Source: Cyanophora paradoxa CCMP329 (taxonomy: Eukaryota > Plantae > Glaucophyta). From it: a stretch of DNA of 64,000 bases. A program made the position numbers and the translations under genes. The notes under the pieces are model-generated. The model was not told the origin of the DNA and ran no database searches. It worked only from the letters and a program-made list of their open reading frames with translations. Location: assembly GCA_004431415.1 (NCBI GenBank), contig QPMI01000157.1:1-64000 (forward strand), written 5' to 3'. This document shows, in pieces, positions 8,022-64,000 of the stretch. Position 1 is the stretch's first letter, and every line of letters begins with the position of its first letter.

Positions 8022-8043
8022 GACTTGGTCTCGCAGTAGCGTT

Positions 8044-8053
8044 TAGAATTTCT
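8044..8053. promoter_or_regulatory. Near-palindromic TAGAAWTTCT motif, putative bidirectional promoter element (second copy at 8781-8790)
   Basis: TAGAATTTCT lies 18 nt before ATG 8072 and TAGAAATTCT 17 nt before ATG 8808. The first reads AGAAATTCT on the minus strand, ~23 nt before the YqaJ ATG. Confidence 0.45.
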
Positions 8054-8071
8054 TGATGTGTGCAATTGCAA

Positions 8072-8770: not shown

Positions 8771-8807
8771 GGGGTACAGGTAGAAATTCTCAGCGAGCCG
8801 CGAGCGA

Positions 8808-9523: not shown

Positions 9524-10925
9524 GGGGGTACAGCATTCAGTTAGAGTCTGAGCATAGTTAGAGGCCGGAGGCCCCGAGGGGTACGTCGGACGTGTTAGTC
9601 CCCGTGCCTCCCCGAATGCAATATAACAATGCAACCTCCGCAACGCGTGACTCATCAACCTCCGAGGGTTAACAATACATTGACAGCGAAGGGGCAAGCT
9701 CGAGAGCTCAACGCTTCACAAAGGCCCACTTATATACCTAGGGGCCTGCAGCTGCCGCAGTGCATCTGATTTCGCCGTGCAGATAACCCCGAATTATGAC
9801 GCGTGCGTGTATATACTGGCGCGCGCGCGGCGCGCATGCGCGGCGTGCACGTGCTTCGAAAATTCCTTCGACTCATGCATGGAATCCGACCCGAGACGAG
9901 ACGACGACGAACCTTGAAGCTCTGATGCTCGCTGTGCAACGGACATGCCGCCCGAAAATACTACTGATGGTGACTTACACACCACTCGTGCACGCGGTTA
10001 GCGGACTAGCTGGGGCGAGGGCTGCTGGGGCCTTCGCCCCGAAGGAACTGACGGGCTGGGGCGGCTAACAAGGGTCTAGGCCCGGGCCGCGGGGGCGGCC
10101 GCACCGGACGCGGCGGCGGCCGAGGCCTTGCGGGTGGCCTCCTTGCACGCGGCCTGCAAGAGGTCAGGGGGGTGCAGGCGCCGGCCAGGAGGGGCGGGCG
10201 CCTTGTGCATGGACCAGTGCGACCGGCGGCACGCCTCGCCGCAGTACTGCACCTGCCCGCACCCCGAGCAGCTGCGGCTTTTTCAGAGAGGAGGACCTGG
10301 AGGAGAAGGCGGCGGTGCGGGACGCGTTTGAAGGCATTGCCTTCATATAATGGGAAAGGATCAATTTAGTTTTAGTTTTTCGCCAATGGAATGAGAAGAA
10401 GGGAGGCGGGGCGCACGCTGCGAGGTCGCCGGCGGCGCGGCCGCAGGCGCGGCAGGAGGCGGCGTTCAAGGGCGGCTGGTTCTCCGAGCTGCGCGCCGGC
10501 GCCGCCGGCGCGGGGGCCTTCTTCTTCTTCGCGGGGCGGGTCTCCTTGCGGGCGGACTGCGGGGCGTCAAACCAGGAGATTTAGAGGGACTGGAAGGGGT
10601 GCGGGGCTTGCCGGGGCCGGCGCGGGGGGCGCCTCCTCCCTCTCCTCCACCTCCTCCTCCTCCGCCGGGCCGGATCAGTCGGGGGGAAGGGCGCCTTCGA
10701 CACCCCCTTGAAGCCGCAGCAGTGGCACCCGAACTCGCCGATGACCTGCCGGGGGGGGGGGTCCTCACCTGCCCCAGCGCGGTGGCGACGGAGGCGCGCA
10801 CCGCTGCGGAAGCACGCATCGCAGCGACGGTCAGCGAGGCCCTCGAAGGCGCGCAGAAGCGATCAGTGCCACACGCGCTCTCCAGATCCCTGAAGGTCAC
10901 GAGAGTGAACGACCCGACATCACGG

Positions 10926-11368
10926 TGTCGCGGGCGAAATCTTAGGCGGCTGCAGCCTTAGAGAATTTGCCGTTCGTAGAGACCCGGGTTCAATTCCGGC
11001 AGTTCGCTTCGGCGTACTTAGAGACTCGGGCTCGAATCCAGCGGCTCGCTTTTCATATGTCTGAGCCGTCTGACCGGATCATATGATCTGATCATGAGAG
11101 CTTCGGACGACAGCGTGAGGGCTTCAAGAGCCCGGCGCGTGCGTGTTTAGAGGGATTTTGTTATTCCCGGAGATCGGCCTAGTAGAGAGGCTAGAGTAGT
11201 GAAACTCTGTCGGATCACATCTACGAGTACTGTCATACTGCTGAACATGCATCACGCTGGCCTGGGGCCGGTCTCGCACTCACTGCAAGTCAGAGTCACT
11301 CCATAATCTGTTGTCTAGAATCCCGTGCCACCCCTAGGGCACCGGAATGGGGGATTTCTAGCTCAACA
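10926..11368 (+). repeat. 5' LTR (443 bp)
   Basis: Differs from the 3' LTR by 3 substitutions and one 5-bp indel (by-eye count). Confidence 0.95.
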
Positions 11369-11371
11369 TCT

Positions 11372-11382
11372 TGGGGGCTGCT
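11372..11382 (+). promoter_or_regulatory. Primer binding site, tRNA-Pro
   Basis: TGGGGGCTGCT, 3 nt after the LTR, is the reverse complement of AGCAGCCC+CCA, the 3' end of the tRNA-Pro at 28135-28206. Confidence 0.88.
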
Positions 11383-12464
11383 CAAACGCGAACGCTGGCT
11401 CTTCGAGCGAGCGAAGGGGCTAGCTATAGCCGAGCGAGCTTCGTCTCGCGTTCATTTCATGCGCATAGTCGCTGTGCCTTCAGAAGTCGCTGTGCGCTGA
11501 CCAGAACCGTTTCGCGCATTCGTCCAACCCCTTCCCGCTCGGCGCAACCTATCGCGGGTGAGCGGACGCTGTCGCCAGCGCCATCGCGCCTACGCGTTGC
11601 TAAAAGATGCGTATACATCCGGATCCCTTTGCGTTCCGTCCTGGGGTCGCGACTGGGGCTAGCGCTGGGCTCCGGACCCCGCGCGCATGCCGGCCGCCGG
11701 GCGCCACTCGCGACGACGTCGACGTCGCGGCCGCGGCCGGCGGCCGCGGGCTAGCCGGGCTAGTTCCGAGGCTCTAGATCTAGGCGCCTCGCGCGCGTCG
11801 CAGGGCTCAGGGCTGATCGCCGCTCGCTCGGCGCAGCGTCTGCACTGCAGACCGGGCCGTAGATCGGCGGCTCGTCGGCGCGGCGCGGAGCTGCACCTCG
11901 CGCAAGACCCGGATCCGCGGAGCGCCGCGGGCCGGATCCGGAGCGCCGGATCCGGAACCAGCTGCAGGGCGCGCGCCGGCATCCCGGCTGCGCGCCGGCG
12001 GACCTGCGGCCGGGAGCTCGAGCCTGCGAGCGCGTGCGCGCCGGTCGCGGGCGCGCGGCGCGTCGGCGGCGCGCGATCGGGGCCGCCGGGCCGGGGTCGC
12101 GGCGCGCTGGGCGTGTCGCGGCTCGCGCGCGGCGCGGCGGCGCACCCGCGGGGAGGCTGCGCGCGGCGCGGCCGCGGGAAGGCGGTCGACCGTCGACCGT
12201 GAGCGACTCTCGGCAAGAGCAGCCGGCGCTTCGCTGCGAGACCGAGCGCACTTAGCTCCAGTACTAGTGGAGCTAGTGCTGTTGCAAGTGAACTCTCAAC
12301 TCTCAAGCCTCGGAGGCTCGCACTCTAGTCTGCGACTGAACGGGCACGTGCACACGAGTCGACGTCTGAATAAAGTATTCGGAGTCGAGGGGCGCGCGGG
12401 CCTACACTAGTACTACGGCACGCGGTATCGAGCGGCGGGCGGACGTGTCTAGCTCAAGTTCTCC

Positions 12465-13646
12465 ATGGCTCCGAGTACACGGGGCAGGGGCGGAGGCCAA
12501 CGCGGCGGCCACGGGGCGGCTGGCCATGGAGCGCAAGTGCCTGATCCTGTGCCTGCACCAGCTCCGCCCCCGGCTCCAGTTGCACCACCGGTACCAGCTC
12601 CGGCGCCAGTTGTGGCCCCGGCAGCGGTAGCCGCTGCTACAGTCGAGAACACGTTGAAGAACGCACTGGACGCGTTAACTGGCAACCTGGACATGCAAGC
12701 ACGTCACCACGAACTGCGAGAATTCAAGAAGAAAATTCCTCCTTTGACTAATACGCGTACGGGTGTACTGTCGTGGGTCGAGTCGCTGGAACGTTAGCCA
12801 ATTTGTATCCGGCCTCCGACATACACAGAACCCGACAAGACGTTGGCAGAGCTTGCACTGTCTTCGCTGCAGCGCTCGACAAGTGACCCGGTGCATGGAT
12901 CCTTCTGGACGGCTGTGCTGGGTGTCATGAATACGAAGTCGGGCAACGGCGACTTGGACATGACGTCGTGGGCACAAATTCGTGAGCATCTGCTCGGCTT
13001 GGTGCCTGGCAACAAATTCGAGCTTCTGAAGAACACTATCAAGACGGCGGGACGTCGCTTCTCTGCGCTGGAAAATCCATCTGAACTGGATGCGCAAGCT
13101 TTTATAAATAATGTCGTTCTTCTTCGTCGTCTACTCCAGCTTCAAGATTCGTTCTCCGACGAGATGTTGATCGCGGAAATAATGTCGTCGGATTCGATCA
13201 CTTCACCGTCAATGATCAAGCTAACGAGTAAAATTCCGGAGGGCTCCAGAAATAATCTGGCGGAGTGGAGTCGCGAATTCTTCAGTCGAGTTCGGTCGCG
13301 CAACGCGCTCGAGATTCGATTGCAGCAAGCAAGGACTGGCAATTAATTTTCTACTGCAGCGGCAAGAGCTCCTGCTGCTCAACTTTCCGCCTTCCCTGAT
13401 CGTCATCGCCTCGAGGAGGACGACGTCGACGTCGACGAGCCCGACAGCAAGAAGCTGAAGTTAATTTCAAGTCAGGGCGGCGGACAACCTCGTTGGTGCG
13501 ATGAATGCAAGAGCGGTTCGCACAACACTGCCGTTTGCAGCAAGCGACTTCGGCGGGAGTTGGATCAGTTGCAAGTGCAATATTCAGCCTGTCAGCAGGA
13601 GCTCGAGAAATATCGGAGCTCCGGCAGTCTGGCGGGTGCGAAGTGA
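12465..13646 (+). pseudogene. gag: gag-like ORF with two in-frame stops and a C-terminal CCHC zinc knuckle
   Basis: One frame throughout, with TAG at 12795-12797, TAA at 13344-13346 and a final TGA at 13644-13646. WCDECKSGSHNTAVC fits Cx2Cx4Hx4C. Confidence 0.82.
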
Positions 13647-13687
13647 AAGTATACGCCATGGCGGTTCGGTCTCCGCCTGTGAAGCGA

Positions 13688-13862
13688 ATCGGCCTTGGGG
13701 AAAGGAGAGGCCCTTAGGTCTGTTGGTTTGATGTGACGGATTTCAAAATGCGAAATTCGGATAAATGAACAGACCTACTACCCCGTTTTCGACCCTGGGG
13801 AGCACGTTGGTGCGGCCCGTTTTCCTATGAGAGGCCTCTAATGGGCAGTAACAGCACGTCGA
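13688..13862 (+). repeat. Transposon-end-like repeat, copy 1 (inside the LTR element; AT-rich tract continues to ~14240)
   Basis: ATCGGCCTTGGGGAAAGGAGAGGCCCTTAGGTCTGT is an exact inverted copy of 15854-15889; patchy similarity continues for ~175 bp. Confidence 0.75.
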
Positions 13863-14883
13863 AAAGCACAGAAAAGCATTTTCCCGGAAAAAACTAGAAA
13901 GCGCAAATCACATTGGTCCTCCGATTTGTCCTCCAAGTCAAAATTTGAAAATTATTAATTTCGAGAGACTGCACCCCATTCGCTAGAAAATAGTTTCCAA
14001 ATTAACGAAGCGCCACGTGGCCGGCCAGCAAATTTGTACGAGTTAGGGTCGTTGTGTGCCACGAGGTGGGTTTTAAATATACTTGATGTGTTAGTTGAAA
14101 GATTATCAAAATAAACAATTAAGACAGAGCCTTATTACTGCGAATTACATTCGAATGATTCATAGATGATTATAATTAACCACAAAAAGCGCCGAAAGTC
14201 GTTTTCATTCAGCTGAGACGACCAATGGGCCCCTCGGGGCCTGTACTCGCGATCGGTACAATTGCGGCCGATTGGGCCCCGCATCGATATCTGTACCCTT
14301 GCAGCACAATTCTGTACCCTCTCACTTGAGTGTGTACCCTTGCCGAGTGGACCCCCCTATTTCTCCTCCCCCCTCCGGATCCGGGATCCCCCGTAACCGC
14401 GCGCGGTTGCGTATGCGATTTCGCGATCGTGATCGCGATTTCATATCCGATGATCGTTGAGTTTAGCTTGTACATGAGCTTCGAAAATATTTTCTGAGCT
14501 CTAGATGTGAAGCTTTAGTTATATTCTGCCAGTTTCTGATTTTCTCTGATTTAGGTAGTGCAGCCTTCGCGCTGCTAGATTTAGTGCAGCCTTCGTGCTG
14601 CTAGGGCCGTCAGGGCGTTAGAACGCCTAGGCCACTTTTCATTTATACACGTCTTTTGAATTTCGCACGCAGGCATTTCCGAGGTTCTCATATGTAGACG
14701 GCTTAGCTTTTGCAGCCTTCACTGTCGGATTGCTTATCCATATTTTCTGGCCTGGCCTCTTCGTGGTACTGAGGTTTCAGGTCCTGATTTACGTTTACAT
14801 ATGCTAGGCCTCGCATTTTGCTGCGACGAATGTCGCGGGCGGGGTAGCAGGCGCCGAGGACGGCTTTTCTCTGCTGCGACGAA

Positions 14884-15321
14884 TGTCGCGGGCGAAATCT
14901 TAGGCGGCTGCAGCCTTAGAGAATTTGCCGTTCGTAGAGACCCGGGTTCAATTCCGGCAGTTCGCTTCGGCGTACTTAGAGACTCGGGCTCGAATCCAGC
15001 GGCTCGCTTTTCATATGTCTGAGCCGTCTGACCGGATCATATGATCTGATCATGAGAGCTTCGGACGACAGCGTGAGGGCTTCAAGAGCCCGGCGCGTGC
15101 GTGTTTAGAGGGATTTTGTCATTCCCGGAGATCGGCCTAGTAGAGAGGCTAGAGTAGTGAAACTCTGTCGGATCACATCTACGAGTACTGTCATACTGCT
15201 GAACCTGCATCACGCTGGGGCCGGTCTCGCACTCACTGCAGGTCAGAGTCACTCCATAATCTGTTGTCTAGAATCCCGTGCCACCCCTAGGGCACCGGAA
15301 TGGGGGATTTCTAGCTCAACA
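14884..15321 (+). repeat. 3' LTR (438 bp)
   Basis: Near-identical to 10926-11368. Confidence 0.95.
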
Positions 15322-15714
15322 ACGGCGGCTGAACGGCATGCGCAGATGTGCGTGCTGCGGGGGCTGCCCCCGGCGGGCCTCACCGACATGGTCCGCGAGA
15401 CGGTCACGGACGCCAATCCGGAGCTTTCGTGCACGTCCGGATCCCGGATCCGAGTGCGATCGCGATCGGCCATGGAAGCGCGCGCGAGTTAGAGCTCTAT
15501 ATAGCTAGCCTCGGACGCGCGCGGCTCGGTCACGCACGTGCACGGCCGCGGTGACTCCAGCCTACCAGCCGTGACAGAGGCTTTTTGCAATTTCCATCGG
15601 CGAAGGGGAAGCAAGCTGGAACTTCGGAAGCCAATGACATTTGCGCTTGTCCGTGAATGGGGCGATTGAGCTTTTCGGCCAATGGCGATCGGGCTTCACG
15701 CGAACAATTTCGTT

Positions 15715-15889
15715 CGTACGTGCTGTTAGTGCTTGTTAGAGGTGTCACATTTGAAAAGTAGCGCCGCCATCGTGCTCCCTAGGGTCGAAAATGGGTACCT
15801 AGGTCTAAAAATTTTGTCTATAAAATCAATTTGAAGTTTGCCACAAGACGGGCACAGACCTAAGGGCCTCTCCTTTCCCCAAGGCCGAT
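15715..15889 (-). repeat. Transposon-end-like repeat, copy 2 (inverted)
   Basis: 36-bp exact inverted match plus shared blocks agaccta, ttttcgaccct.gggagcacg.tgg, cctctaa, taacagcacgt. Confidence 0.75.
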
Positions 15890-16567
15890 CAGCACTGGCC
15901 TATAGCTAGTAGCATGCAACTGGCCATGGGCCGCGAGGTCCGCGACGTCGACGTCGGCGTTCCGATCATCGGATCCGTGCCGGCGCTGGATCCCGAGCTT
16001 GAGTCCCAACCGACGGCGACCCACTCGCGGGACCAGTCGACGTCGGCGCACGCGTGCGATCCGCCGCCGTCACCGCGGAGCTCGAGCTAGCGCTCGCGAT
16101 CGAGCCTGCAGCTGGGCGCGCCGGGGTACAGCGCCTATAGCTAGCATATAGGAGCCTTCGTACGCGTGCACGTCCGATCGAGATCTAGACGTCTGACTCC
16201 GCAGCGTGCTCGTCGAGGATGCTGCCGCGAGCTAGCTAGCTTGGCCGCCGCGGCGCCGCGCGCTTCGCTCTGGCGATGGCCGCGTCCGCGGTACTTCGAT
16301 GTAGGAGATATCGCCGGCGTCGGGCCGGGCCCACGTGCAATCCGGAGCCTGGGCGCGCCGGGGTACAGCGCCTCGGAGCCTTCATGCACGTCTGAGAATC
16401 GGCAGCGTGCGCGTGCTCGTTAAGTATGCTGCAGTTGCCGCCCCCGTTAGCTGGCGCCTAGGCGAAGGCCGCCGCGTGCGCCGACCTTCAGCTCCTCCGA
16501 CCGGTTGGATCCACCTGGAGCTGGAAAGCCGAGAGGCCGGCCGTGAGCCCGGGCGAGCCGCTGAGGC

Positions 16568-22500: not shown

Positions 22501-23343
22501 GAGTGCCCCGCCGTCAAGGCCGCCGCCTTCAGCCCCGACGGCAGGGCGCGCCCCGCCGCCTCGGCGCTAGCTGCCGGCTGACAGGGTCCCGGCGCGCCGC
22601 AGTGGCTGGTGACGGACGACGCGGCGGGGCGCCCGTGCCTCTTCCTCGCCGCCCCGGCGGGCGCCCCGGACGGCTGGCCCGTGTGGAGCTCGGCGGCCGT
22701 CGGGCACCTCTCCTGGGGCTCCCAGTTCGCCAAGTTCAGCCCGGACTCCCGCCACGTCCTCATCGAGTGCGCATGCGCGCCCTCCCGCCCCTCCCCCGCC
22801 CCCTCTGCTTTGCGCCCTTTTCATCAAGCTTCCTGTGCTTGAATGAAGATCTCACGCTTCCTCCCTCGAACTGATCGCTACCCCTCGAGCTGATCGCGCG
22901 CACACCGCGGGGCCGGGCGCAGGTCGGTGGTGGTGGCCGGGGCGATGCGCTTCGTGCTCGACTCCGCGGGCTCCCCCGTCGAGGAGCCCTGGCTCTACTA
23001 CACCGCCCCCGACGTCCGCGGCGGGGCCCACAGCGCCGACGGCGCCGCCGTCGCCGTGCTCTCGGCGCGGGACCGGACGCTGCGGGTGCACGCGACCGGG
23101 GTGGCGGCGCTGGCGCGGCGCGCGTGCGCGATGACGCGGCGGCCCGTCGCCGACGCCGACCTCGAGGCCCTCTCCGTCGCCGTGCGCCCCGCCCGCCCCG
23201 CGCCGCCTCTCGGGCCGGGCCCTGACCGCCGGCCGCCCGTCGGGCAGGGCACCGGGGCCGGCGACCTGGACGAGGGGCCCTCGAGCGCGAGCGCGACCTC
23301 TGCAGCGTGCCCCGTGGGGCCCTGGATCGACTCCGTCCCCTAG
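16568..23343 (+). CDS. TIR_2 domain - transmembrane helix - WD40-like repeat protein
   Basis: Spliced TIR: SAFLSYSRCNK/EFAERLVEALRGQSLSCWADWQDIPAT/ADWRAAIRRGIQVSENVIFLLTP/EWTASAECRRELA/AALEEGKRLVPV...LQAINW/IYMREGDDF. Then a hydrophobic stretch VLAALGALAALAALL, and WD-like motifs LATAGSDGAVGLW, SPDGRLL, FSPDG, FSPDSRHV. Confidence 0.8.
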
Positions 23344-23944
23344 CGCTCGATAGTATAGCTAGCTAGCACGATGAGAAGTTTTGAAGCTTGAACAGATCAC
23401 GCGTATACGTACGCATTGCGCATATACATGTATCGCCCATGCCGGCCCGGCGCCGGGGCCGTGGCCCGCGGCCATGGCCATGATATAATTATATAAGTAT
23501 ACGATGGATCCTCGGATCGCGAGGCACTGAGTCCTGAGGGGTTCATGATCATGATTCAAAATTAAAGCGCTGCAGCTGGCACTGCGCGGCATGTACATGT
23601 TTCGATCCATCTTGGTATCGACGCGTACGGGCGCATGTGATCATGTGATCGTGACCTCGACTGATTGTTTCTCGATAACAGAAATTCGATATCAAATATG
23701 CAAGAGCGCCAAAATCTGCGACGTTACCTGAAAACTATAATACGGCGCGCGCACGGTTAACGAGACCTACAGCTAACGAGTGCGTGGGGGTTCGAGGACG
23801 CAACGGGCTCGACCGCGAGAAAGGCCCCGTCGCTCGGGGAGCGTCCTCAGCAGCCGCTGCAAGTTTTAAAGTTTCGAGAAGGGCGCGCGGGGGCGCACGT
23901 GGGCAGCGGTCCCCGCCCGCCGCCGCGCCGCGCCGCGGCGTCGT

Positions 23945-26028: not shown

Positions 26029-30399
<4,371 letters not shown>

Positions 30400-30837
30400 G
30401 TTGCTTGTTCTCGTTGTGAGCCCCTGTATACGTAGGTCCGTGTCTTCTCCCACTTTTTGCAGAATGCACAGTGCTAGCCTTTCCCACAGCCTGATCATGA
30501 CAGCTGCATGGCACATGCTTGCACTTGCTACATCATATGCATCAATATTTAATATTGCACATATGCACACATGCATGTTCGAAGCTGCGCATGCAGCTGC
30601 AGCCACGAACATGTATTCGACCAAGCTGAAGCTCAAGTGATCTAGCTAGCCATATGCATAGGCCTCGCGTACATATGCATGTGCCGCACTGCGGCAGTTC
30701 GTATTCAGTACTAGTAAATCACATGTACATGTACATGTACACTAATAAGGCACATATTCGAAAGAATGCATATATATACTTGGATGCACGCACAGAGACG
30801 ATGTTCGTAACATAGATCGAAATCAAGCTTAACCTAA

Positions 30838-31514
30838 CTAATGGACGGCATTGCTGCTGCTGCTGCTTCTTTTCGTAGATCCTCCGCTGCATTGAGCAGT
30901 GTGGAGGACGCAGAGAGAAGGTGCTGCGAGCATCATCAGATCGCCAAACACGGCAAAGAACGGAGGATGAAGAAGACGCGCCTTTCGCTTCAACGCTAAT
31001 CTTACACCAAGATCACGGGCCTGTAATTCTTCTGGTGGAGCTTGCTGGAAGACGTGGTGAAGCGTTAGATGCTCGCCGCCAAGTAGCATCGACAAGAGCG
31101 ACAGCATAAACTCGAGCTCAACGCGCGCATGCCTGCAAGGCGGGGACATCAGACGCGTGCCATAGAGCGAATGAGGGCGACGCTTACGTCAATTCCTCGA
31201 GGGGTCCTGTCCACGGGAAGGTCTGCTTCAGTGGGTCGACGGGTGGCACGTCGGAGGCGCTCTGCAATCCACTCTGTCGCGCTAGGTCGAGCGCTGCGTA
31301 ATCGATCTTCCGAAGTTGTGCGGACAGATCTTCTTCGGCTGCATGCTCTCTGCACGGCGCCTGAGAAGCAGCAAGCCGCGACGGGACAAGCGCCTACGCA
31401 CGGCGCGAGCGTCTCAGTCTCTCCTTCGTAGCAGAGAATCTCGCGCTCAATGCGCGGCTGCATGATCAGAAGCGGAGGACGCCGCGCGGCGTCCTCCTCC
31501 ATCGGCGCCGACAT
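30838..31514 (-). CDS. Small unknown spliced gene; exon structure uncertain
   Basis: MSAPMEEDAARRPPLLIMQPRIEREILCYEG followed by a GT donor; downstream exons not resolved. Confidence 0.35.
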
Positions 31515-32055
31515 TCAAGATTGATGTGACTCCGGGGTCGCCGAACTTCACAGGCTGCTCTTGTTCGAATTGCTGATGTTGATGCGTAGTACTAGTGAGC
31601 TTGCAAATGGCCTTTTGATCTGCTTGCTCTGCCAGCTATGTGCGCAAGCATATACCCCCCCGGCCCGAATCTCGAGACCCCGGCCCAACCTCTCCCCCCC
31701 CCAAAAAATTAATACTGGGCCCCCATGCCAAGGCATCAGCCTCCCTCAAGCTTTCAGCATTCCATGCTCTTTGATTCACCCTTCAGCAAAGATTCCTACG
31801 TGTGCAAGCACTTTAGCAGCTTCGAATTGCAAGGATGTGGAACCATGGCCAAAAAGAATTGCAAAGTTTTAAGCCTAAGGAATACTGCTTGATCACGAGA
31901 ATGAGAAGTGTATACGTATACATGGCGATGGACTGTCCCTTTCGAGGGAGCGGATTTTGCAAGACTGTACAGCAGCTGAAATGGTTGAAAAGTCAAAACT
32001 AGGTAATGGTCTTGATGAAACGAAGTCGAAGGGCCACAGCCATGTGGGCCGGTAT

Positions 32056-33042
32056 TCAACGCGAGGCCTCGAAATCGACCGCGGCCATCTGCAGAATAAA
32101 TGAGGCAATGCAAACGAGACATGCGGACCAAGCGGCAAGGGACACGCGCACTGTATTCACAAGCGAGGGGAAGCCAAACTTGGCGACGAGCTGGGCCAGG
32201 AGGTTTGACGGCACGCAGCCAGTCGAAGTCGCGTCACACTTCATTCCTGCCCGAGCTCGTCGTTGGCGGGAGGCCGGCTGGCGGTGGGAAGGGATCGCAC
32301 CCTCGGGGCAGCAGTGGTTCTTGTCTGCACAGCACTCCGCCTTGGGCGACGGGCAGCAGCTGTAGGGAGTACGTGTGACTGCACCATTCAGCCCCGAGCT
32401 ACAGGAGCCGGCCAGCACGCACCCATACTTCTCCTTGGGCTCTGGGGCCGGCTTGGCGCCGGGCGACGGCTTGGGCTCGGGCGCCAGCGGGCAGCACGTT
32501 GACCCCTGTGCAATTCATGAGTTATGCAGCCGTATGTTAATTCGTGATAAAATCAGACCTCCGGGCAAATCGTGCGCTTGTCTGAGACGCCGCGTCAGCA
32601 GCACCAGCGCATTGCGGGGGGCGACGGGGCGATGCTGCACCAGGGCACTCGATCGTAGGCGTGGCAGCGAACTTGACCATGGCACTCATCTCCACGTTCG
32701 CACCCGGAAGCAGGCAGGAGCTTGCGGTCGATCCGCACTGGTAGCCGTTCGGACAGCAGTGCCTGCATAGCGCGTCAGGGGCGGCCAAGCGATCTGAATC
32801 ACAGATCATAGAGCGGACAGGTGATCTGGGCAGCAGATCGCATCTGGCGCGGGGCAGCATCCAAACGTCCCCTTCTTCTCGAGCTCGCAGCACGTCGTCT
32901 GATCGGGGCACGCGGACTTCTCTGCTCCAAGTCAGCGACGAAACCAGGGGTCAAAACGACGCGCACGGTCGGGGCAGACGACGAACGCGGAGGCAACCGA
33001 GGCGATCAAGAGCGCTCCTACGAGCAACCAGCAGCGAGACAT
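32056..33042 (-). CDS. Secreted protein with two granulin domains
   Basis: Signal peptide [20 protein letters not shown]; [40 protein letters not shown]; [24 protein letters not shown]. Confidence 0.9.
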
Positions 33043-33211
33043 CTTGAAGCGGTTGCGCGCCTGCGACCCCTCGACTCGCTTTTGACGCACTACCCCCCCA
33101 AGTCGCTGGCGGCTGTCCGCGTGTGTGCAGGCCGCTTGCAACACCCCTAGCGACGCGTGCATAGAGAGTTCAGCTTGTCTTGGAGCGGCTAGTTTCCTCA
33201 CAGCGGCGGCG

Positions 33212-35299
33212 ATGGCCGGGATTCGAGTCCAGCCGACGAGGGTGTCGCAGCCCCAGCCGAACCCGGACGATGTCGTCGTGTGCTTTGATATCAGCAAGCG
33301 CGAGACACATCACCCTGCCCAGGGGTTCAAGCAGATGTGCAGGAAGCTGAAGTTCAAAATAACAACGTGAGCTCGCCCACGCCCGCGAACGGCTGCCGCG
33401 CGGTTGCGCTATCAGCATTCACTAGCTTAGTTGGTCTTCTGTCGATAGCTACGGCGCCTGTGCGTAGCTGGTCGCTAGCTGACCTATTTTCACTTGCTCG
33501 CAGGAACAAGGATGAGATCACCCCCAAGGTGCTGAGCGGCGTGCATCTCTTCGTCATGGGTGGACCTACCGATCAGATCTCATCAAAAGAGGCGCGCTCC
33601 GCTCCCGGCGCGCTGCAGCGGACTTCCGCGACCTCCGTAGCTAACACGCTCAGCGCAGTTCGAGACGCTCAAGGGCTACCTGAACATGGGAGGCAGCGTG
33701 CTCTTGTTCCTGGGCGAGGGAGGCGAGGGGAAGTTCGGCACGAATGTCAACTTCTTGCTCGAAGAGTATGGCATCATGGTGAACAACGACGCGGTGATCC
33801 GGACAGTGTACTACAAGTACCTGCATCCGAAGGTTCCTCCGCACACGCGCAGCGCGCGCCCGGCCCCTCGGCAGCGACTCACGGACCCCGCGCGAGCAGG
33901 AGGTCTTCATCAACGACGGCGTCGTGAACCGCGCCATTACGAAGGCGGTGAACAACGTGCACGGGAAGACGTTGGAAAGATCGGGCAGCATGCGTGTCGG
34001 GTTCGCGCGCTCTGCCGCGTCGCCGCTCACGTTTCCTTCCTCACGCCCCTCGTTCCTTCTGGCAGGTCCGCCGGCGCCTCCAAACCGTCCGCAGAGAACG
34101 TCCTCAACGATGATATCAAAGGGTTAGCACGCGCGAAAGGTGTTGCCACGCGCGGGCTCACCGCTGACCCGCGGGTCCGCTCAGGGGCGTCACGTTCGTT
34201 TACCCCTACGGGGCGACCCTGTCCGTCCAGAAGCCCGCCATCCCCATCCTGGCCACCGGCCAGATGTCGTACCCCCTCAACCGTCCCATAGCAGCCGTCT
34301 CCTCGAACAAGGCTCGCCCCCGCCGGCGCCGCCCCCGCCGGCGCCGCCTGCCTGAGCGTCGCGCAGCAAACGGGCAAGGGCCGCCTACTGGTGCTGGGCT
34401 CCGTTCGCATGTTCGACGACCAGTTCCTGGAGCTCGAGGAGAACTCGAAGCTCATGGTGCGGCCCCTTCTCCTCCGAGACCGGCCGCACCCGCCCAGCCG
34501 CCGCTTCCCTCCGCGCCCCGCCGAGCCGGCCCCGCCCCGCCCCGCAGGACGTTCTCTTCCGCTGGCTCCTCGGCTCCGACGGCATCGAAATGAACTCTGT
34601 GGTGCGAGCGAAGGCGGAGCGAGCGCCGGGCGGGGCGGGGCGGGGCGCAGCCGGCCCCGCGGGGCGGCGGGGGCTGAGGGGTGCGGGGCGGGGCGCAGGA
34701 CGCGGACGACCCGGACATCAACGAGTACCACCACGTGCCGGACACGGGGGCGCTGGCGGAGCGGCTGCGGTGCTGCCTGCAGGAGAGCGAGGAGCTGCCG
34801 CGGGACTTCACGACGCTGTACGACGAGAAGCTCTTCAAGTTCGACACGAGCCTCATCCCGGAGGCCGTCACCCTCTACGAGCGCCTCGGCGTCAAGCACG
34901 AGCCCCTCACCCTCATCCCGCCCCAGTTCGAGACGCCCCTCCCGGCCCTCCAGCCGGCCGTCTTCCCCCCGGCGCTGCGCGAGCCGCCCCCGCCGGCCCT
35001 CGACCTCTTCGACCTCGACGAGCACTTCGCGAGCGAGAAGTCCCGCATGGCCACCCTCTCCAACAAATGTGCCCCAGGGCCCCACCCCCCCGCTCCCGCT
35101 ATCTGGCGCTTGCTGAGATCTTCCGCCCGCGGCAGGCACGGAGGCGGACCTGGAGTACTACATCCGGGAGAGCGGGGAGATCCTGGGGGTGACGCACAAG
35201 CTGGCGGCGAACAGGCGGGAGGCGAAGCACATCCTCGAGTACGTCTTCACGCAGCTCGTCCAGTGGAAGAAGCTCAACCAGGACCAGGCCCTCGAATAG
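33212..35299 (+). CDS. IFT52: Intraflagellar transport protein 52
   Basis: GEGGEGKFGTNVNFLLEEYGIMVNNDAVIRTVYYKYLHPKE, FVYPYGATLSVQKPA, SYPLNRPI, HEPLTLIPPQFETPLPALQPAVFPP, LFDLDEHFASE. Confidence 0.95.
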
Positions 35300-54592: not shown

Positions 54593-57110
54593 ATGGCACA
54601 ACGTGCGCCCGTCCAGCCACTTTGCCGTATCGCCGGTGCGGTGCTGGATGTGGCTTGACCGCAGCTTGCGCTCGCAGCGGTGGAGCACCACAAATGGAAG
54701 GACGTGCTCGGCGCGTACGAGCGCGCGTTGCAGAAGAAGAAGGCGGAGTCGCAGACCATCCAGGAGAAAGTGAAGCAGATCCAGGAGGTCAAAGCGACGC
54801 CGTTCATGCTGCACGCGCGGGCCGCGCCGCCCACGCGGCGGGAGTCGGAACCCTTCGTGGACACGGGCCTCGAGGGGCGCGACGTCGCCGTCCTCCGCGA
54901 CCCCACCGGCGAGGAGCGGCCCTACTGGTCCGCCCCGCGCCCCCGACGCGCCCCGGCCCCCCGCCCCGCCCCGCTGAGGCGGGCGCAGGGAGGGCGGCCT
55001 GGGCCCGCAGCTGCCCGAGTACGAGTGGACGCCCTCGCCCTCCGCCGGGGACTCCGCCTCCCAGCCCAACGCCTTCGTGCGCCCCGCCCGCCCCGCCCCG
55101 CCCGGCGCGCGCGCCGCCCGACGCCAGCGGGGTCCGCAGGAGGTGCTCAAGCGCTACGCGTCGGTGAAGGAGGAGGAGCCGGCGGCGGCCGCGCCGGGCC
55201 CGGCGGCGGCGCTCCCCGCCTTCCAGTCGCGCTCCATGAAGCCCCCCCGCAAGCCGCCCCGCCGGGACCCGCCGGCAGCGCCGGCAGCGGCGGCAGCGGC
55301 GCCGGCTCGCGGCCGGGGTCGCGCGGGGACGGGGCGGGGCAGAGGGGTCGGGGACGGGCGGGGGCAGAGCGGGGGTCGGGGGGCTCGGGCGGGGGCAGCC
55401 GCCCGGGAGCCGCCAGGGCGCCGGCTCCCAGCGCTCCAGCGGCAGCGGCTCGCAGCGCGCGACCACGCCGCAAGCCGGCTTCTTTGACGACGGCGCTGGG
55501 GCCGGCGCCGGCGCCGGGCCCGAGCGAGGCGCGTCGGCCGGCGCCGGCTCGCAGCGGGCGCGGCCCGGCTCCCGCGGGCCCCTCCCCGCAGGCGCCCCCG
55601 GCTCCGGTGGCGGGGGGCGCGGACCCGGCTCGGGCTCCGGCAGCCGCGGAGGCGCCGGCTCGGGAGGCGGCTCCGTGGCCGGCTTCGCGGGCATCGCCGG
55701 CGCCCTCGGCCGGCCGCAGTCGGGCGCGTCGGTGCCGGGCTCCTCGCGCGGCGTCTTCGGCTCCGCCGCCGAGGGGTACGGCGACGGCGGCGAGGGCTCG
55801 GACCCGGAGAGCCCCCCGCTCGGCGGTGCGCCCGCGCGCCTCGCCCCCGCGCACCCCATCTCACGCCGGCGCAGCGCTGGAGTGGACGGGCCAGTGGCCG
55901 CCGCCCCTGCCGCACGAGTCGGAGCTCGGCCCGGGCCCGCGGGGCGCCTCGCGGGGCGCCTCGCGGGGCGCCGGCTCGCAGGGCCGCCACGGCGCCGGCT
56001 CCGGCTCCGGCTCCCGCCCGGGCCCCGCCTCGGGCCTCGGCTCCCGCGCCGGCAGCCGCTCCGCCTCGGGCCTGAGGCCGGGTAGCCGGGGCGAGGCGGC
56101 GGCCTCGGGCGGCGCCGGCGCGGCGGCCGGGGTCGAGCTGGCGCTGGCGCGGGGCGCCTCGGCCTCGGCGGAGGCGGGGCCGGCGCGGGGCCACACGGCG
56201 GAGCGGGAGGGCGGGGCGTGGCGGGGCGCTCGGCGGGCCTGGCCGCCCAGTTCCTCGAGTTCGAGCTGCGCCGCATGGCCCGCGCCGCCCGCACCCCCTC
56301 CACCCCCTCCCGCCCCTCCTCCCGCCCTCCCTCCGCTCCCGCCAGCGCCCCCGCCGCGCCGGCCCCGGGGCGGGGAGCCCTCCCGCCGGGCCGCGGCGGC
56401 CTCCGCTGCATGACGCCCGACTCGGCCTCCGTCGCCTCCGCCCCGCGCCTCCCTCGGCCCCGGCCGCCATGGCCGCCCGCCGGGCTCCCCGCAGCGGCGG
56501 GGCCCGGCGGTGCAGACGCAGCCCTCGCCGGCCGCCGCCACCGCCCTCGCCCTCGTGCCCCCGTCCCGCTCCCCGCGCCCCCGCCTCCTGCTCCTCAACC
56601 CCCGCCCCCCCCGCCCCCGCGCTTCCGCCTCTCCCGCCCCTCCCCCGCGCCCCCGCCCCGCCCGCTCCCCGTCCCCGTCGGTGTCCCCGCCCGCCTCGCC
56701 CGCCCGCCCCCGGGGCCCGGCGGCCGCCCGGCGGCCGACCTCTCGTCCGCCGCCGCCCTCCTCCTCGCCTCCCGCCCTCCCGCTCCGCCTCCGCCCCCGC
56801 CTCCCCTCCCGGCCCCGCCCCGCCCCCCGCCCCCGCCCCGATCGCGAGCCGCCGCCCAGCCGCCCCCGGGGCCGCCGCCGGGGCGCCGCTGGCGCGGCCC
56901 CACACCCCTTCCTTTTCCCTTCTGAGGCCGCGGTCCCAGGCGGCTACTGCGGCGGGGGCCCCGAGCCTCGTGCGCGCGACGCAGCCCGTCGCGCTCAGCA
57001 GCGGCGCGCCGCCGCGGCCCTACTCCCTCAGCCCGCTGGCTCAGCTGCAGCGCGCCCCGTCCGCCCCCCACCTGCCCCTCCCCTCCAGCCTCTTCCCCAT
57101 CTCGGTGTAG
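54593..57110 (+). CDS. Unknown Gly/Ser/Pro-rich protein with a short N-terminal coiled coil
   Basis: MAQ/LALAAVEHHKWKDVLGAYERALQKKK...EERPYW/EGGLGPQLPEYEW..., ending SSLFPISV*. Confidence 0.6.
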
Positions 57111-57295
57111 CCTGCCCTGAGCTCGAGCCGTACGCGTGGCAACTGTGTCTATATATAATCGAATTGATCGAGTCCGAAAAGGTATTTCAGGGGGTACGAT
57201 AAGTTGGTGGCCTTCGGCCAAAAGTTCGGCGCAAGCCGTTGTGGCTTGAGCTATGAGCTTAAGCTTGAGCCACGAAGCTTGATGGGCTCTTCGTT

Positions 57296-57386
57296 GAGCT
57301 TGAGCTAGAGCTCAACGAGCTTGAGCTAAAGCTTAACGAGCTTGAGCTATAGCTTAACGAGCTTGAGCTATAGCTCAACGAGCTTG
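57296..57386. repeat. Tandem 21-bp repeat, 4.3 copies, each with an internal palindrome
   Basis: GAGCTTGAGCTA(G/A/T)AGCT(C/T)AAC x4; degenerate copies from ~57244. Confidence 0.9.
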
Positions 57387-58158
57387 TTCACGAGCTTGAT
57401 CATCCAGCTGCGGCTTGTGCTTGTTAGTTCCGAGTTGAATTAGTTCCGAGTACCCCACCCTCGCGATCGATGTCCGCGCTCCTCTCCTGGCGCGTGGGGG
57501 CGACTTTGATGATGTTGCGCATCAACTACATCCTCATTGGACTCGCGAACATCGATATCGGAGTCCCCCGCGCTTCTGTATTGAGCGTCGTGCTGAGCGA
57601 CACATTCGCGATCAGATGGTTCTTAGTGATCATGCTGTTTTTGAAGCCGGAGTCGCATTTCGACGGCGTATTTTCAAGTTTTGAGAAAATGGTCTGGAGA
57701 TATGAATCTTCTCCACCTTTTTAGCGTCTTTGCGGGGCGTGCAATACGTTCCTTGTGCAGCGAGACGTACGAACAGAACTTTGTATGAGATCTAGAGCCA
57801 GGAACTTAGAATCAATTAACGGCTTGCGCCGAAAATTCTCGTTTTTCAGGGGGTACGTGAGGCTCGCGCACGCCACATCAGCTAGCTATATAGCGATAGC
57901 TAGCGCTGCAGGCTAGACGACCCGGTCGTCTATTGCAATCGTGCTAGCGCTGTATACGTAGTGTTGCACATGTCCTAGGGTCGGAAGGTCCGACGCGTTT
58001 GATCATGAGCTAATGCTTCTGCTCATGATCACCTGATGTTGCAGCTGTCGAGTCCTTTTCATCTGGCTACCACGACCGCGACCGCGGCCGGATCATCGAT
58101 CATGGGAGGCGCTCGTTCGGCTCCAGTCGATCCACGACCTTCGGCTCCAGCACGCACA

Positions 58159-61100
58159 ATGGAGGAGCAAGCACTTGCGCATGCGCATGCAAGCGATCGC
58201 AAGACGCGTGCGCAGAAGAGCGAATTGCCGGAGAGCACGGGCTTGCGGCAGTATATCGAGTTGTTCCGTTTGCCGAATGAGGTGGTCTCGAGCTCGGAAA
58301 GCGCAACGTTAACTGGCCCGTTGCCATGGCCCCAGGCAATCGCAGCAGACAGCACAAAGCAGAGGCGGTGCCGCTTCAGCACGAAAGGGCCCTTCCAGCT
58401 CGCTACATCCGCCGACTCGGCCTTCTGGGTCTCCCGTGCGGCCCCTCCCTCTTGCTACCTTCGGGGGCGCGCGCTTCCGCTCCTTACGCTCACCAGAGGC
58501 TGGCCGGCTGTTCCGATGGAGGCTGACGCTGCTGGACGCCCCCGGCTGCGACGAGTTCGAAGAGGAGCAGCTGCCGGAGCTGCCGGTGTCGGGCCTCCAC
58601 CACGGGGCCCGCGACCGGCTGAAGCAGGTCGCCTGCGGGGCCAACTTCGTCTTCGCTCTCTCCGAAGAGGGCGTCCTCTTCGCGCGCGGCAGGTGGGTCA
58701 TCCGGGACAGAGGGCGTCCATTTGGGGCCGTAGCTGACGCTCCCGGGGCGCACCCGGGTGCAGAAACGAATCGGGGCAGCTGGGCCAAGACAGTGACGTG
58801 CCCCACAGTTACAGCCAATCCTTCCTGCGTGTGCCGTACAAAGCGCCGGTGGCGGCGGTGTCGGCGGGGCACGCCTTCGCTGCCCTCCTCACGGCGGGGG
58901 GCGAGGTGGCGACGTGGGGCGACAACTCTTACGGGCAGCTGGGGCACGGCCCGGCCGTCGGGCCCCTCCTTCGCCGGCCAACGGCAGTGAAGAGCCTCCA
59001 GCAGTGGAAGCCCTGCGTAAAACTTGCATGTGGTCCACATCATGTCGTCGTAATTGACACAGAAGACAATGTTATCGTGTGGGGTTGCACAGGCTTGCCT
59101 CGCTCTGACGCCGTGCGCCTGACCTTTGCTAAAATTTTGTGGCTCTGGCCTCAATCGATATCGTTATACTTTGCTGCAGGATCGGATGCGGGCGGTCCCT
59201 GGAGTGGTGCCCGGGGCACCGCGCGACGTTGTTCAGGTCGCCTGTGGAGGCGCCATTGGTGTCGACGGGCACACTGCCCTTCTTACTGGTGCATGCATAT
59301 GCCGCCGGTCCCCTTCGCGATCGGATCAATCCTTCAAAATCTACTCATGTATCTTTCGGACCTTGATGCTCAGCACATGGCAAGGTGTTCACATTCGGAC
59401 GCGCTGCCGAGTGTCAGCTCGGCCACCACTACGGATTCTGGGAGGCGCCTTGTTCTCAAGTGCAGGTCCGGATCCAGGATCCGATCATCCCCCCTTGAAC
59501 TTCTCCCAAATGAATGCCAGCAGATGGTAACAAGGTTGGTCCGGCTCGTGACAACCGTCTCTTGCAGTGCTGGCGCCACGTATCTGCGTGCTGGTGCATT
59601 CTTGTCTGTTCTACATATACGTATACACTATATGACCTAGTCAGTCTATGACCATGTTTATCTATGCGCATGCAGAAGACGGCGAGCTGTACCGTTTTGG
59701 CTCGGGTCAGTACGGTTTACAGCAATTAATAACTAATGTGCGTGATATCAATCGTCAAACATATATCGGCACGACTTGTTACATCAGGGCATACTTAATG
59801 CATTTGCCGCTTGACACGTTCACGTGCACGTGCGCAGAACCACGTGGCAGACATTGTCTCCTCCAGTTACCACACCATCGCAATCTGCGGTTTGCATTAA
59901 CACTGACAGTTGTATATTAACGTTGCTTGCCATTCGACATATAACAGCTCTTCCTTGCATGCGCATGCGCGTGCACAGTTGTCCGGGCGCACGCAAGGTT
60001 GCAGCAGACGGATCCAGATGCAGATCTTGCAACGAAGCTTCAAAGCGCACATTTCAAGTTCGAAATCGAGAAGGCTCTTATACTTAATAGTGTTGAACAA
60101 CAAAACGCCACGGTTTGTGGCTGGTTTTCCTGATGCTGTTCCGAGATTAAGTTGCTTCGAGTTTTAAATGTTTCCCTCTTCATCTTCAGAATTCTTCGCA
60201 TGCTTCGAACTCGAATTATGCTCCAGACGTCGATCCTGCTGCTGTGCAGTTGCATGCAGCTTCTGCCCGGCTTGCAGTTGAAGGTGAGCACGCCGAAAAT
60301 CAAAGTCTGCAGCTCTATTTTGATTTTAAGTAGTGCCGACCGATCCGCGAACCATGCGTGTGGCGGATGTGTCCGAGTGGCTTCGATCTCTTGATCTTGG
60401 AATGCTCGCGGCTTCCTTTGAGAACAATTGCGTGGATGGGATGGTGCTCTTAACGCTCACCGATGCTGACCTCCAGGGGGAACTCGGCATCTCGTCAAGC
60501 CTCATCCGCCGCAAACTTCTAATGAAGGCTAGTTCTTTGTTCGATTTTACGGTTTCAATTTCTCTGGTTTTCTCATACACTATTTGTTTAAATTACGTTC
60601 TTTCAGATCGGCGAGCTCGCGCAACAGCATAATCTTTCATCAGAGCGGCCTCGTGATCAGAACACTCAGGCTCACGCGTACGATCAGCGGCCTCAAGCTC
60701 TGGCAATTTCAATGCGCTTGCTGCCACCGGGGTGCTTGGTGTTCAATTGTTACCAAATTCACAATTCGAAACGTAACTGTCAGATTTGAGTTTCATGTGT
60801 TTCTGTCATATCGTCGTGCTGGAGGCTCTGATCGCTCCCACCTCCTTCGCGAGCGTCTCGCTGCTTTGGGGTTTATGCTTTCTTCCCCCTGCTTACAGCT
60901 GATGATTGCAATTGCTTTACCTGATGGATATCTGCAGGTACCGAGTGTTCATGGATGTCTCAGAGCTTGGACAAGGCACATTCGACCAGCAGCTTGTGGT
61001 AATTAAATTGTGCTCGATTCTCCACGAATTATTTGTCTTGACGGTGAAGCGCCGGTTTCAGACAAAGCTGCAGGCGTCAGTGCTTGTGGTGGCGGTTCTC

Positions 61101-61489
61101 ACGCCAGGAGCGTTAGATCGCTGCCGGATCTCTGCGGTGGGCTCGGAGAACGATTGGGTTCGCAAGGAGCTCACCGTCGCCTGCGAAAGCAAGAAGGCCG
61201 GCCGCTCTGCTCTCCTCTACTCTCATCGCCGCTCTAAAATATTGAACAGGCCATAGTTCCGGTTCTCGACCCGAGATTCGAATGGCCTGTCGATTTGCCT
61301 GCCGAGATCCGCGACCTACCTCGACATCAAGGTTAGCAAATCAGATTGCAATCGATATTGATCATGATGCTTCTGTGAACACATATATACCTTCGTACGG
61401 CAGGCGTTGTGTGGCAGCACGACTATGTCGATGCGTGCGTGGTCAAGCTCTGCCAGTACATTCAGAGCGCTGTCGACGCCGTGTCATAG
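58159..61489 (+). CDS. RCC1-repeat - SAM - SARM1-like TIR protein
   Basis: RCC1 repeats (QVACGANFVFAL, VSAGHAFAALLTAGGEVATWGDNSYGQLG, LACGPHHVV); SAM (VADVSEWLRSLDLGMLAASFENNCVDGMVLLTLTDADLQGELGI); TIR (VFLSYRR...DWVRKEL...IVPV). An alternative in-frame ATG lies at 58102. Confidence 0.85.
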
Positions 61490-61786
61490 TGTTGACTACG
61501 TCCATATATATATAGATTCCTTTGCTCCTTCATTTATATATATATATATATTATATTGTGTCCTTTGCTCCTTATATATATGTTGCAATTGATTGATTTG
61601 AACCCCATGCACATGCAATATGCTTCATGGCATGTGCATTAATCAAAGAGCACACCAAATCCCCTCCCCTCCACACCCTCCGCTTCTTCCCTCCCCTCCC
61701 CCCCCACCCCCCCCCCCCGCCCCCCTCGCGGGTCCCCCCCTCTCCCCTGCGGATCCCCGCAATCGCCCGCCGCCCTGCTTTGGGCG

Positions 61787-64000
61787 GCGCCGCCCAAGCG
61801 GCGGGAGTCGGAGCCCTTCGTGGACACGGGCCTCGAGGGGCGCGACGTCGCCGTCCTCCGCGACCCCACCGGCGAGGAGCGGCCCTACTGGTCCGCCCCG
61901 CGCCCCCGACGCGCCCCGGCCCCCCGCCCCGCCCCGCTGAGGCGGGCGCAGGGAGGGCGGCCTGGGCCCGCAGCTGCCCGAGTACGAGTGGACGCCCTCG
62001 CCCTCCGCCGGGGACTCCGCCTCCCAGCCCAACGCCTTCGTGCGCCCCGCCCCGCCCCGCCCCGCCCGGCGCGCGCGGGGGCCGTCTGACGCCAGCGGGG
62101 GCCCCAGGAGGTGCTCAAGCGCTACGCGTCGGTGAAGGAGGAGGAGCCGGCGGCGGCCGCGGCGGGCCCGGCGGCGGCGCTCCCCGCCTTCCAGTCGCGC
62201 TCCATGAAGCCCCCCGCAAGCCGCCCCGCAGGGACCCCGCCGGCAGCGCCGGCAGCGGCGGCCCCGGCGCCGGCTCCCGGCCGGGATCGCGCGGGGACGG
62301 GGCGGGGCGGAGGGGCGGCGACGGGGCGGGGCAGAGCGGGGGTCGGGGGCCGGGCTCGGGCGGGGGCAGCCGCCCCGGCAGCCGCCAGGGCCCCGGCTCC
62401 CAGCGCTCCAGCGGCAGCGGCTCGCAGCGCGCGACCACGCCGCAGGCCGGCTCCTTTGACGAGGGGCACGGCGCCGGGCCCGAGCGGGGCGCGTCGGCCG
62501 GCGCCGGCTCGCAGCGGGCGCGGCCCGGCTCCCGCGGGCCCCTCCCCGCCGGCGCCCCCGGCTCGGGCGGCGGGGGGCGCGGACCCGGCTCGGGCCCCGG
62601 CAGCCGCGGCGGCGCCGGCTCCGGAGGCGGCGCCGGGGCCGGCTTCGCGGGCATCGCCGGCGCCCTCGGGCGGCCGCACTCGGGCGCCTCGGTGCCGGGC
62701 TCCTCCCGCGGCGTCTTCGGCTCCGCCGCCGAGGGGTACGACGACGGCGGCGAGGGCTCGGACCCGGACAGCCCCCCGCTCGGCGGTGCGCCCGCGCGCG
62801 TCGCCCCCGCGCGCCCCATCTCACGCCGGCGCAGCGCTGGAGTGGACGGGCCAGTGGCCGCCGCCCCTGCCGCACGAGTCGGAGCTCGGCCCGGGCCCGC
62901 GGGGCGCCTCGCGGGGCGCCTCGCGGGGCGCCGGCTCGCAGGGCCGCCACGGCGCCGGCTCCGGCTCCGGCTCCGGCTCCTGCCCGGGCCCCGCCTCGGG
63001 CCTCGGCTCCCGCGCCGGCAGCCGCTCCGCCGCCGGCCCGAGGCCGGGCAGCCGGGGCGAGGCGGCGGCCTCGGGCGGCGCCGGCGGGGCGGCCGGGGTC
63101 GAGCTGGCGCTGGCGCGGGGCGCCTCGGCCTCGGCGGAGGCGGGGCCGGCGCGGGGCCACACGGCGGAGCGGGAGGGCGGGGCGTGGCGGGGGCGCTCGG
63201 CGGGCCTGGCCGCCCAGTTCCTCGAGTTCGAGCTGCGCCGCATGGCCCGCGCCGCCCGCACCCCTCCCGCCCCCCCTCCCGCTCCTCCCTCCGCTCCCGC
63301 CAGCGCCCCCGCCGCGCCGGCCCCGGGGCGGGGGAGCCCCTCCCGCCGGGCCGCGGCGGCCTCCGCTGCATGACGCCCGACTCGGCCTCCGTCGCCTCCG
63401 CCCCGCGCCTCCCCTCGGCCCCGGCCGCCATGGCCGCCCCGCCGGGCTCCCCGCAGCGGCGGGGCCCGGCGGTGCAGACGCAGCCCTCGCCGGCCGCCGC
63501 CACCGCCCTCGCCCTCGTGCCCCCGTCCCGCTCCCCGCGCCCCCGCCTCCTGCTCCTCAACCCCCGCCCCCCCGCCCCCGCGCTTCCGCCTCTCCCGCCC
63601 CTCCCCGCGCCCCCCGCCCCCGCCCGCTCCCCGTCCCCGTCGGTGTCCCGCCCGCCTCGCCCGCCCGCCCCGGGGCCCCGGCGGCCGCCCGGCGGCCGAC
63701 CTCTCGTCCGCCGCCGCCCTCCTCCTCGCCTCCCGCCCCTCCCGCTCCGCCTCCGCCCCGCCCTCCCCTCCCGGCCCCCCGCCCCGCCCCCGCCCCGCCC
63801 CCGATCGCGAGCCGCCGCCCAGCCCGCCCCCGGGCCGCCGCCGGGGCGCCGCTGGCGCGGCCCCACACCCCTTCCTTTTCCCTTCTGAGGCCGCGGTCCC
63901 AGGCGGCTACTGCGGCGGGGGCCCCGAGCCTCGTGCGCGCGACGCAGCCCGTCGCGCTCAGCAGCGGCGCGCCGCCGCGGCCCTACTCCCTCAGCCCGCT
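61787..64000 (+). repeat. 5'-truncated direct duplicate of 54824-57037; continues past the window end
   Basis: Near-identical including introns, with scattered substitutions and indels. Confidence 0.92.

Follow-up and report, generated by a model that had tools for sequence, protein, structure and literature searches.

The glaucophyte alga Cyanophora paradoxa CCMP329 carries and transcribes a gene in which RCC1-like repeats, a single SAM domain and a SARM1-type TIR domain follow one another in one open frame. The gene occupies 58102-61489 on the forward strand of the window (the 64,000-nucleotide stretch of contig QPMI01000157.1 that was analysed), is divided into 17 exons and encodes 738 amino acids. 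Its TIR domain retains the catalytic glutamate and most of the BE/AE interface residues of SARM1, and its closest paralogue has a different architecture. The interpretation we favour, to which we give about an even chance on the present analysis, is that the gene could encode a gated, NAD+-depleting switch used in defence or in response to damage.

The exon model was built from three-frame translation and a splice-site listing, and public contigs were then aligned with 57000-62200. On the forward strand, exons 1-6 lie at 58102-58435, 58497-58692, 58809-59112, 59180-59288, 59374-59465 and 59524-59593; exons 7-12 at 59676-59737, 59838-59889, 59979-60112, 60190-60283, 60334-60527 and 60607-60731; and exons 13-17, which encode the TIR domain, at 60784-60870, 60938-60998, 61062-61196, 61250-61331 and 61404-61489. 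Joined, they give 738 codons with one stop, at the end; 14 introns are GT-AG and two are GC-AG. Fifteen of the 16 introns are represented by joints in RNA-type contigs: that of intron 1 in two runs, and those of introns 3-16, including all four TIR introns, in three runs (X15, X17 and X19) from three studies, so the gene is transcribed in each of them. None of these joints is present in the genomic-type run X1. The label “RNA-type” is a guess on our part: the runs are taken as RNA because they contain spliced joints that the DNA-type run does not have. The RNA joints set the donors at 60113 and 60732 and ruled out 60074 and 60678. Intron 2 (58693-58808) is absent among the joints listed; three in-frame acceptors are available to it (58793, 58808 and 58814), and alternative splicing or retention is possible over 58693-58850, where RNA contigs break off and accumulate. 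A local mis-join is excluded by a single genomic contig that runs unbroken over 57806-61659. A pseudogene or a contaminant is ruled out by the intact frame, the spliced introns and the genomic contig over the locus.

A first-pass annotation of this DNA had proposed one gene from RCC1 to TIR, and the contigs bear this out at the level of assemblies, if not of a single molecule: the RCC1, SAM and TIR exons very likely lie on one mRNA. The joints that link RCC1 to TIR exons are all in frame, and RNA-type contigs overlap across the region (X15 record 10 contains exons 3 and 4; X19 record 19, exons 4 and 9; and X17 record 18, of 1061 nt, exons 9, 11, 12 and 15). Such contigs are assemblies, not molecules, and their joints may derive from either of two tandem copies (see below). 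It is highly improbable that two transcription units, one for RCC1 and one for SAM-TIR, merely look like a single gene. Among the contigs aligned with the locus, no RNA-type contig spans the whole gene, and in X19 the depth is 68-76 in the 3′ contigs as against 19 in the RCC1 contig; but the joints of introns 3-16 occur in frame in all three runs, X19 record 19 and X17 record 18 link exons across the intervening region, depth is about even in X15 and X17, and stop codons are absent between the RCC1 and SAM-TIR parts.

At the 5′ end, RNA contigs extend upstream to 57850. Together with an ATG scan, they place a 5′ UTR at 57850-58101 (forward strand), as far as the contigs reach; it holds one intron (about 57986-58044; both X15 record 9 and X17 record 15 pass directly from 57985 to 58043) and a two-codon upstream ORF. 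The start had earlier been placed at 58159, and this was revised: 58102 is the first long-frame ATG of the spliced RNA, lies in frame 57 bases further upstream and is inside the RNA contigs, and is therefore preferred. The N-terminus that results, MGGARS (58102-58119, forward strand), fits MGxxxS, the N-myristoylation consensus, and on this pattern match the protein is possibly myristoylated.

The RCC1-like repeats extend over 58390-59990 (forward strand, exons 1-9), and about six and a half of them are visible from Pfam, PDB comparison and inspection by eye. Pfam RCC1_2 matches exon 3 (E 9.9e-13), and exons 2, 4 and 5 give weaker RCC1 matches; the first repeat, those in exons 6-8 and the closure of the ring were read by eye, without a Pfam match. 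The best PDB matches of this part are HERC2 and UVR8 (E 3e-32 to 1e-24), and it also matches eukaryotic RCC1 clusters in Atlas. On the count by eye (~6.5 repeats), the repeats probably form one seven-bladed propeller, although a single-exon model had low confidence (pLDDT 38). No ARM domain was matched in the Pfam and PDB comparison, in which exons 2-5 match RCC1 instead. The UV-B photoreceptor UVR8 is marked by three GWRHT tryptophan motifs. A UVR8-like photoreceptor was considered here and rejected: the equivalent positions read GHAF, GPHH, GHT and YHT, with no Trp.

The SAM domain, in exon 11 and the start of exon 12 (60354-60625, forward strand), is identified by Pfam SAM_1 (E 2.5e-11 on 60336-60527), PDB matches and alignment; the first-pass annotation was thus right to place SAM and RCC1 upstream of the TIR, and all three share one open frame. 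The best PDB match of the SAM is liprin-beta (1.6e-9), followed by the first SAM of SARM1 (3.3e-7). There is no second SAM: in the linkers on either side, exons 9, 10 and 12 give no Pfam match. In the alignment, the middle part of the domain is acidic and its last helix basic, features that would suit head-to-tail polymers; with one SAM, an octamer as in SARM1 cannot be assumed.

The TIR domain spans 60784-61462 (forward strand, exons 13-17) and by sequence is of the SARM1 type (clade 8). Taken singly, its exons are not recognised by Pfam, and the assignment comes from PDB comparison, alignment with SARM1 and a paralogue, P0001. All 19 PDB matches of the TIR pieces are SARM1 or TIR-1, and P0001 gives E 1e-29 on SARM1 versus 0.03 for the next TIR. 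The TIR peptides reported from the first pass, that with the catalytic Glu included, are all present, in five exons over 60784-61489. The TIR exons were aligned one by one with SARM1 proteins, and human numbering was carried over through alligator SARM1 (P0043). In the joined frame the catalytic glutamate is residue 674 (codon 61167-61169, forward strand), which aligns with SARM1 E642 and is invariant in 123 of 123 non-redundant relatives. Kept along with E642 are the active-site Tyr, Arg and Trp residues (Y568, R569, W638 and W662) as well as L579, D594, G601, F603, D627, C629, H685 and Y687. In SARM1 itself, activity or function is sensitive to Y568, D627, C629 and W638 (PMC8266388), and residues tested at its BE and AE interfaces are D594, E596, G601, L579 and H685 (PMC8635717). 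Four of these five interface residues are kept in the algal TIR (D594, G601, L579 and H685); the one notable loss across the interfaces and the SARM1-specific loop is BE-interface E596, which is Ser here and in 4 of 123 relatives. Other substitutions are N679 to Gln (29 of 123 relatives), K628 to Arg, E686 to Asp (32 of 123) and H640 to Arg, which is also what most relatives carry there (96 of 123). The helix after the SYRR motif is of a bacterial-like type, and the C-terminal motif is of the eukaryotic SARM1 type. On these residues, the TIR looks catalytically competent.

Relatives were sought with single exons or natural open frames, with P0001 as a stand-in for the full TIR. Searched against the whole library, the open frame 60939-61196 gave five proteins, of which the best was P0001 (C. 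paradoxa tig00020830_g14506), a protein with a signal peptide, an ectodomain, a TM segment and a TIR, without SAM or RCC1. Summed over the exons, P0001 scores 468 and the runner-up 317, which makes P0001 by far the nearest relative; its identity is 43-74% per exon. Further searches brought in animal SARM1, proteins with SAM-TIR or ARM-SAM-TIR, and a large number of bacterial-like TIR proteins without SAM, some of which are confirmed as bacterial by name or gene context; RCC1 families were absent from the matches listed. In trees of SARM1-type TIRs (145 columns, quick searches, unrooted), the window's open frame, represented by 65 TIR residues, groups with P0001 at SH-aLRT 99. The best trees exclude this Cyanophora pair from the eukaryotic SARM1 group (support 96, 93 and 97); its placement as sister to that group has a support of 25. 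AU tests on a reduced set of 43 rows, without the long P0155, P0139 and P0048 among others, do not reject nesting of the pair inside eukaryotic SARM1 (p 0.49 and 0.39). The TIR phylogeny proposed in the first pass as a check gave the pairing with P0001 firmly and put the pair outside SARM1 in the best trees. The domain may be called SARM1-type, but orthology with SARM1 is not established by these trees.

This bears on how the gene arose. The first-pass annotation had described a SARM1 with an RCC1 propeller in place of ARM; a TIR of the right type, the Glu, a SAM and RCC1 repeats do stand on one gene in a unicellular alga, while the further step to a SARM1 with its ARM exchanged is not supported by the single SAM, by P0001 as nearest relative or by the best trees. 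A true SARM1 orthologue, descended from an ancient eukaryotic SAM-TIR ancestor with RCC1 replacing ARM, is on balance an unlikely origin. Among the fetched proteins, the closest match to the algal SAM is the first of the two SAMs in animal SARM1, with which it has an extra residue and the last-helix pattern in common, although liprin-beta outscores SARM1 in PDB. The C-terminus of the TIR is of the eukaryotic type, whereas helix A is without the SQL/SEL motif that is present in 14 of 17 eukaryotic rows. ARM/one-SAM/TIR proteins do occur in metagenomic samples (P0003), and AU tests do not reject grouping with these (p 0.49) or with two-SAM SARM1 (p 0.39), but the best trees keep the pair outside and the nearest rows by path are SAM-less, bacterial-like TIRs. 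Because P0001 is nearest, the pair falls outside SARM1 in the best trees and the helix is bacterial-like, shuffling of a locally expanded TIR would explain the gene at least as well as a swap of ARM for RCC1.

No other RCC1-SAM-TIR protein was found in a limited search for the architecture, which the first pass had advised across eukaryotes: none appeared in word-based searches (the best 120 of 246 matches, all 101, and the best 120 of 256; proteins of 123-1088 aa) or among the five whole-library matches to 60939-61196. These blanks weigh little, as fusions outside the length windows and distant kin escape such searches, and the gene's own protein was also not returned. About 330 fetched proteins contain no RCC1 similarity, 76 metagenomic RCC1 loci have no TIR or SAM nearby, and a scan of prokaryotic genomes and viral contigs with the paralogue's TIR found nothing. 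Four contigs named as human-gut or gut metagenomes were set aside from the analysis. Three metagenomic loci came to light along the way. Two short contigs carry intronless SAM-TIR frames (L001:85-1791, encoding P0003, with ARM; and L002:1789-3657, encoding P0209) that belong to a single-SAM SARM1-like group beside animal SARM1. The third (L003:1-9278), bacterial-like, holds four TIR genes (TIR-NB-ARC-WD40, TIR-TPR, P0015 and TIR-FGE-sulfatase), of which at least one has a SARM1-type TIR, and is a candidate defence island.

Set against known systems, the protein resembles animal SARM1 and C. elegans TIR-1 in its C-terminal SAM followed by TIR, its N-terminal repeat domain, its TIR type, its catalytic Glu and most of its BE/AE interface residues. 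Unlike them, it has an RCC1 beta-propeller and not ARM, and hence no known NMN/NAD+ allosteric site, one SAM as opposed to two, and a bacterial-like helix A. SARM1 has been described from a choanoflagellate (PMC6040629) and “clade 8” TIRs from amoebae, green algae and dinoflagellates (PMC13142454). With such non-animal proteins it shares a SARM1-type TIR with Glu in a unicellular eukaryote (P0003 also has one SAM), but those fetched are without RCC1 repeats. Glaucophytes are not named in the excerpts available of PMC6040629 and PMC13142454; the atlas of the latter used EukProt, which includes Cyanophora proteins, though the available part of its text and table does not name them. Bacterial SARM1-like TIR proteins (P0015 and P0025) share the TIR family and the helix-A pattern, and differ in that their TIR is usually N-terminal and they have no SAM and no introns; P0015 sits among TIR-NB-ARC-WD40 and TIR-TPR genes. 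The closest TIR of all, that of P0001, belongs to a membrane receptor without SAM or RCC1. Dictyostelium TirA probably has RCC1 repeats as well. An antibacterial role is documented for TirA (PMC5758549), and its published TIR, inspected by eye in the supplement, is without SARM1-specific motifs, so the pairing of RCC1 and TIR in Dictyostelium and Cyanophora is probably convergent. Dictyostelium TirE (DDB_G0278125) is likewise a cytosolic protist protein in which RCC1 repeats accompany TIR; it differs in having two diverged TIRs, and the excerpt that describes it does not mention a SAM (PMC13142454). An RCC1-bearing TIR protein is also drawn, without being named in the legend, in a figure of TIRs that produce cADPR (10.64898/2026.04.20.719644).

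The gene lies in a lower-GC stretch (57100-61700, 49-66% GC per kb) between flanks of 84-86% GC, and other low-GC islands interrupt the 70-85% GC background at 7050-16000, 23300-23900 and 29000-33600. It is contained in a 6963-bp unit (54819-61781, forward strand) whose first 2.2 kb recur: 54819-57037 is repeated directly at 61782-64000, 6963 bp away, at 95% identity with 51 substitutions and 58 gap columns. Because of this recurrence, a tandem copy of the gene is probable, with its start near 65065 (58102 + 6963). The second duplicate starts within the open frame of a GC-rich, low-complexity neighbour gene, without its 5′ part. In a patch at 58549-58609, just before the second RCC1 repeat, RNA contigs from two runs carry six differences that the genomic contig does not have, at about one third of the depth; it may represent a second expressed copy or allele, perhaps the tandem copy. 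GC content also changes along the gene: introns 1 and 2 (58436-58808) are 68-70% GC and the later ones (59113-61403) 32-55%, which may point to a mosaic gene, host-like in its 5′ part and low in GC in its 3′ part. Just upstream, 57185-57857 is a multi-copy element with a 14-nt direct repeat at both ends and a 21-nt tandem array (57296-57386), covered by short genomic contigs with loose ends at 57197 and 57835; it is possibly a small mobile element beside the promoter. The motif GGGGGTAC has 32 copies over both strands of the window, above base-composition expectation, and possibly reflects intron donors read on the opposite strand or the end of a repeat.

As a gated switch, the protein would be soluble, perhaps anchored by a myristoyl group (a guess), and would work like SARM1. 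At rest, the propeller might hold the TIRs apart, or the protein might be too dispersed to assemble; both forms of gating are conjecture. A ligand, here supposed to be a foreign or damaged protein or a metabolite, would bind the propeller, and the SAMs would then cluster the protein head to tail. By analogy with SARM1, the TIRs would build a two-stranded assembly in which the active site is made, and Glu674 would cleave NAD+ to nicotinamide and ADPR or cADPR. We suppose that cleavage could be enough to arrest or kill the cell as a defence or damage response. The gene itself would be a product of domain shuffling, in a family of SARM1-type TIRs that has expanded in Cyanophora. P0001, with its signal peptide and TM segment and without SAM or RCC1, fits the idea of one TIR reused with different front ends, and a recent tandem duplication fits a fast-changing defence family.

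The same gated enzyme could instead turn over slowly and produce a second messenger (cADPR or an isomer) for a channel or other effector, without NAD+ collapse or death, which we regard as rather unlikely. In E. coli, most of the eukaryotic TIRs that were tested produced cADPR and left NAD+ undepleted, and one TIR each from Dictyostelium purpureum and Guillardia theta makes cADPR, although the Guillardia TIR also depleted NAD+ (10.64898/2026.04.20.719644). Against the NAD+-depleting switch also stands the introduction of a preprint, which describes TIR-driven cell death in microeukaryotes as without prior evidence (PMC13142454). One SAM and the change of E596 to Ser could mean weaker assembly, in keeping with a messenger role; against it, the studied members of the SARM1 type deplete NAD+, and a receptor for such a messenger is not in the window. 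It is somewhat less probable still that the gene is a young product of shuffling without a regulated job, or a low-activity scaffold, with RCC1 as a captured fragment of a host gene. No relative with the same architecture was found among the matches listed, and the GC shift after the first two introns is as in a mosaic, but one frame has been kept across sixteen introns, catalytic and interface residues have survived a divergence of about 35% between the gene and its nearest paralogue, and the gene is transcribed in three studies.

The element of surprise is moderate, as publications already describe protist TIRs of the SARM1-like kind and amoebal proteins that combine RCC1 with TIR. The combination of RCC1 and SAM with a SARM1-type TIR was not found described in the literature searched. 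A full-text literature search found no paper on Cyanophora TIR domains; for glaucophytes, which branch deep in the plant lineage, immunity appears to be undescribed. If the enzyme is active, it would make it possible to test directly whether NAD+ destruction of the SARM1 type is in use among single-celled algae, and whether SAM-TIR can be gated by a beta-propeller in the way that it is by ARM. Two wider questions are touched by this: whether SARM1 came from bacteria in one ancient transfer or in several, and how SAM-TIR is kept in check. A bolder version, tentative and somewhat unlikely, is that Cyanophora independently built a SARM1-like switch, in which a myristoylated RCC1 sensor of a pathogen protein or metabolite would free a SAM-driven TIR NADase, the one effector to which several interchangeable sensors (LRR, ectodomain, RCC1) would be coupled. 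If this were true, glaucophytes would possess an undescribed receptor-enzyme immune system, and the gene would be a natural test of what can replace SARM1's ARM gate.
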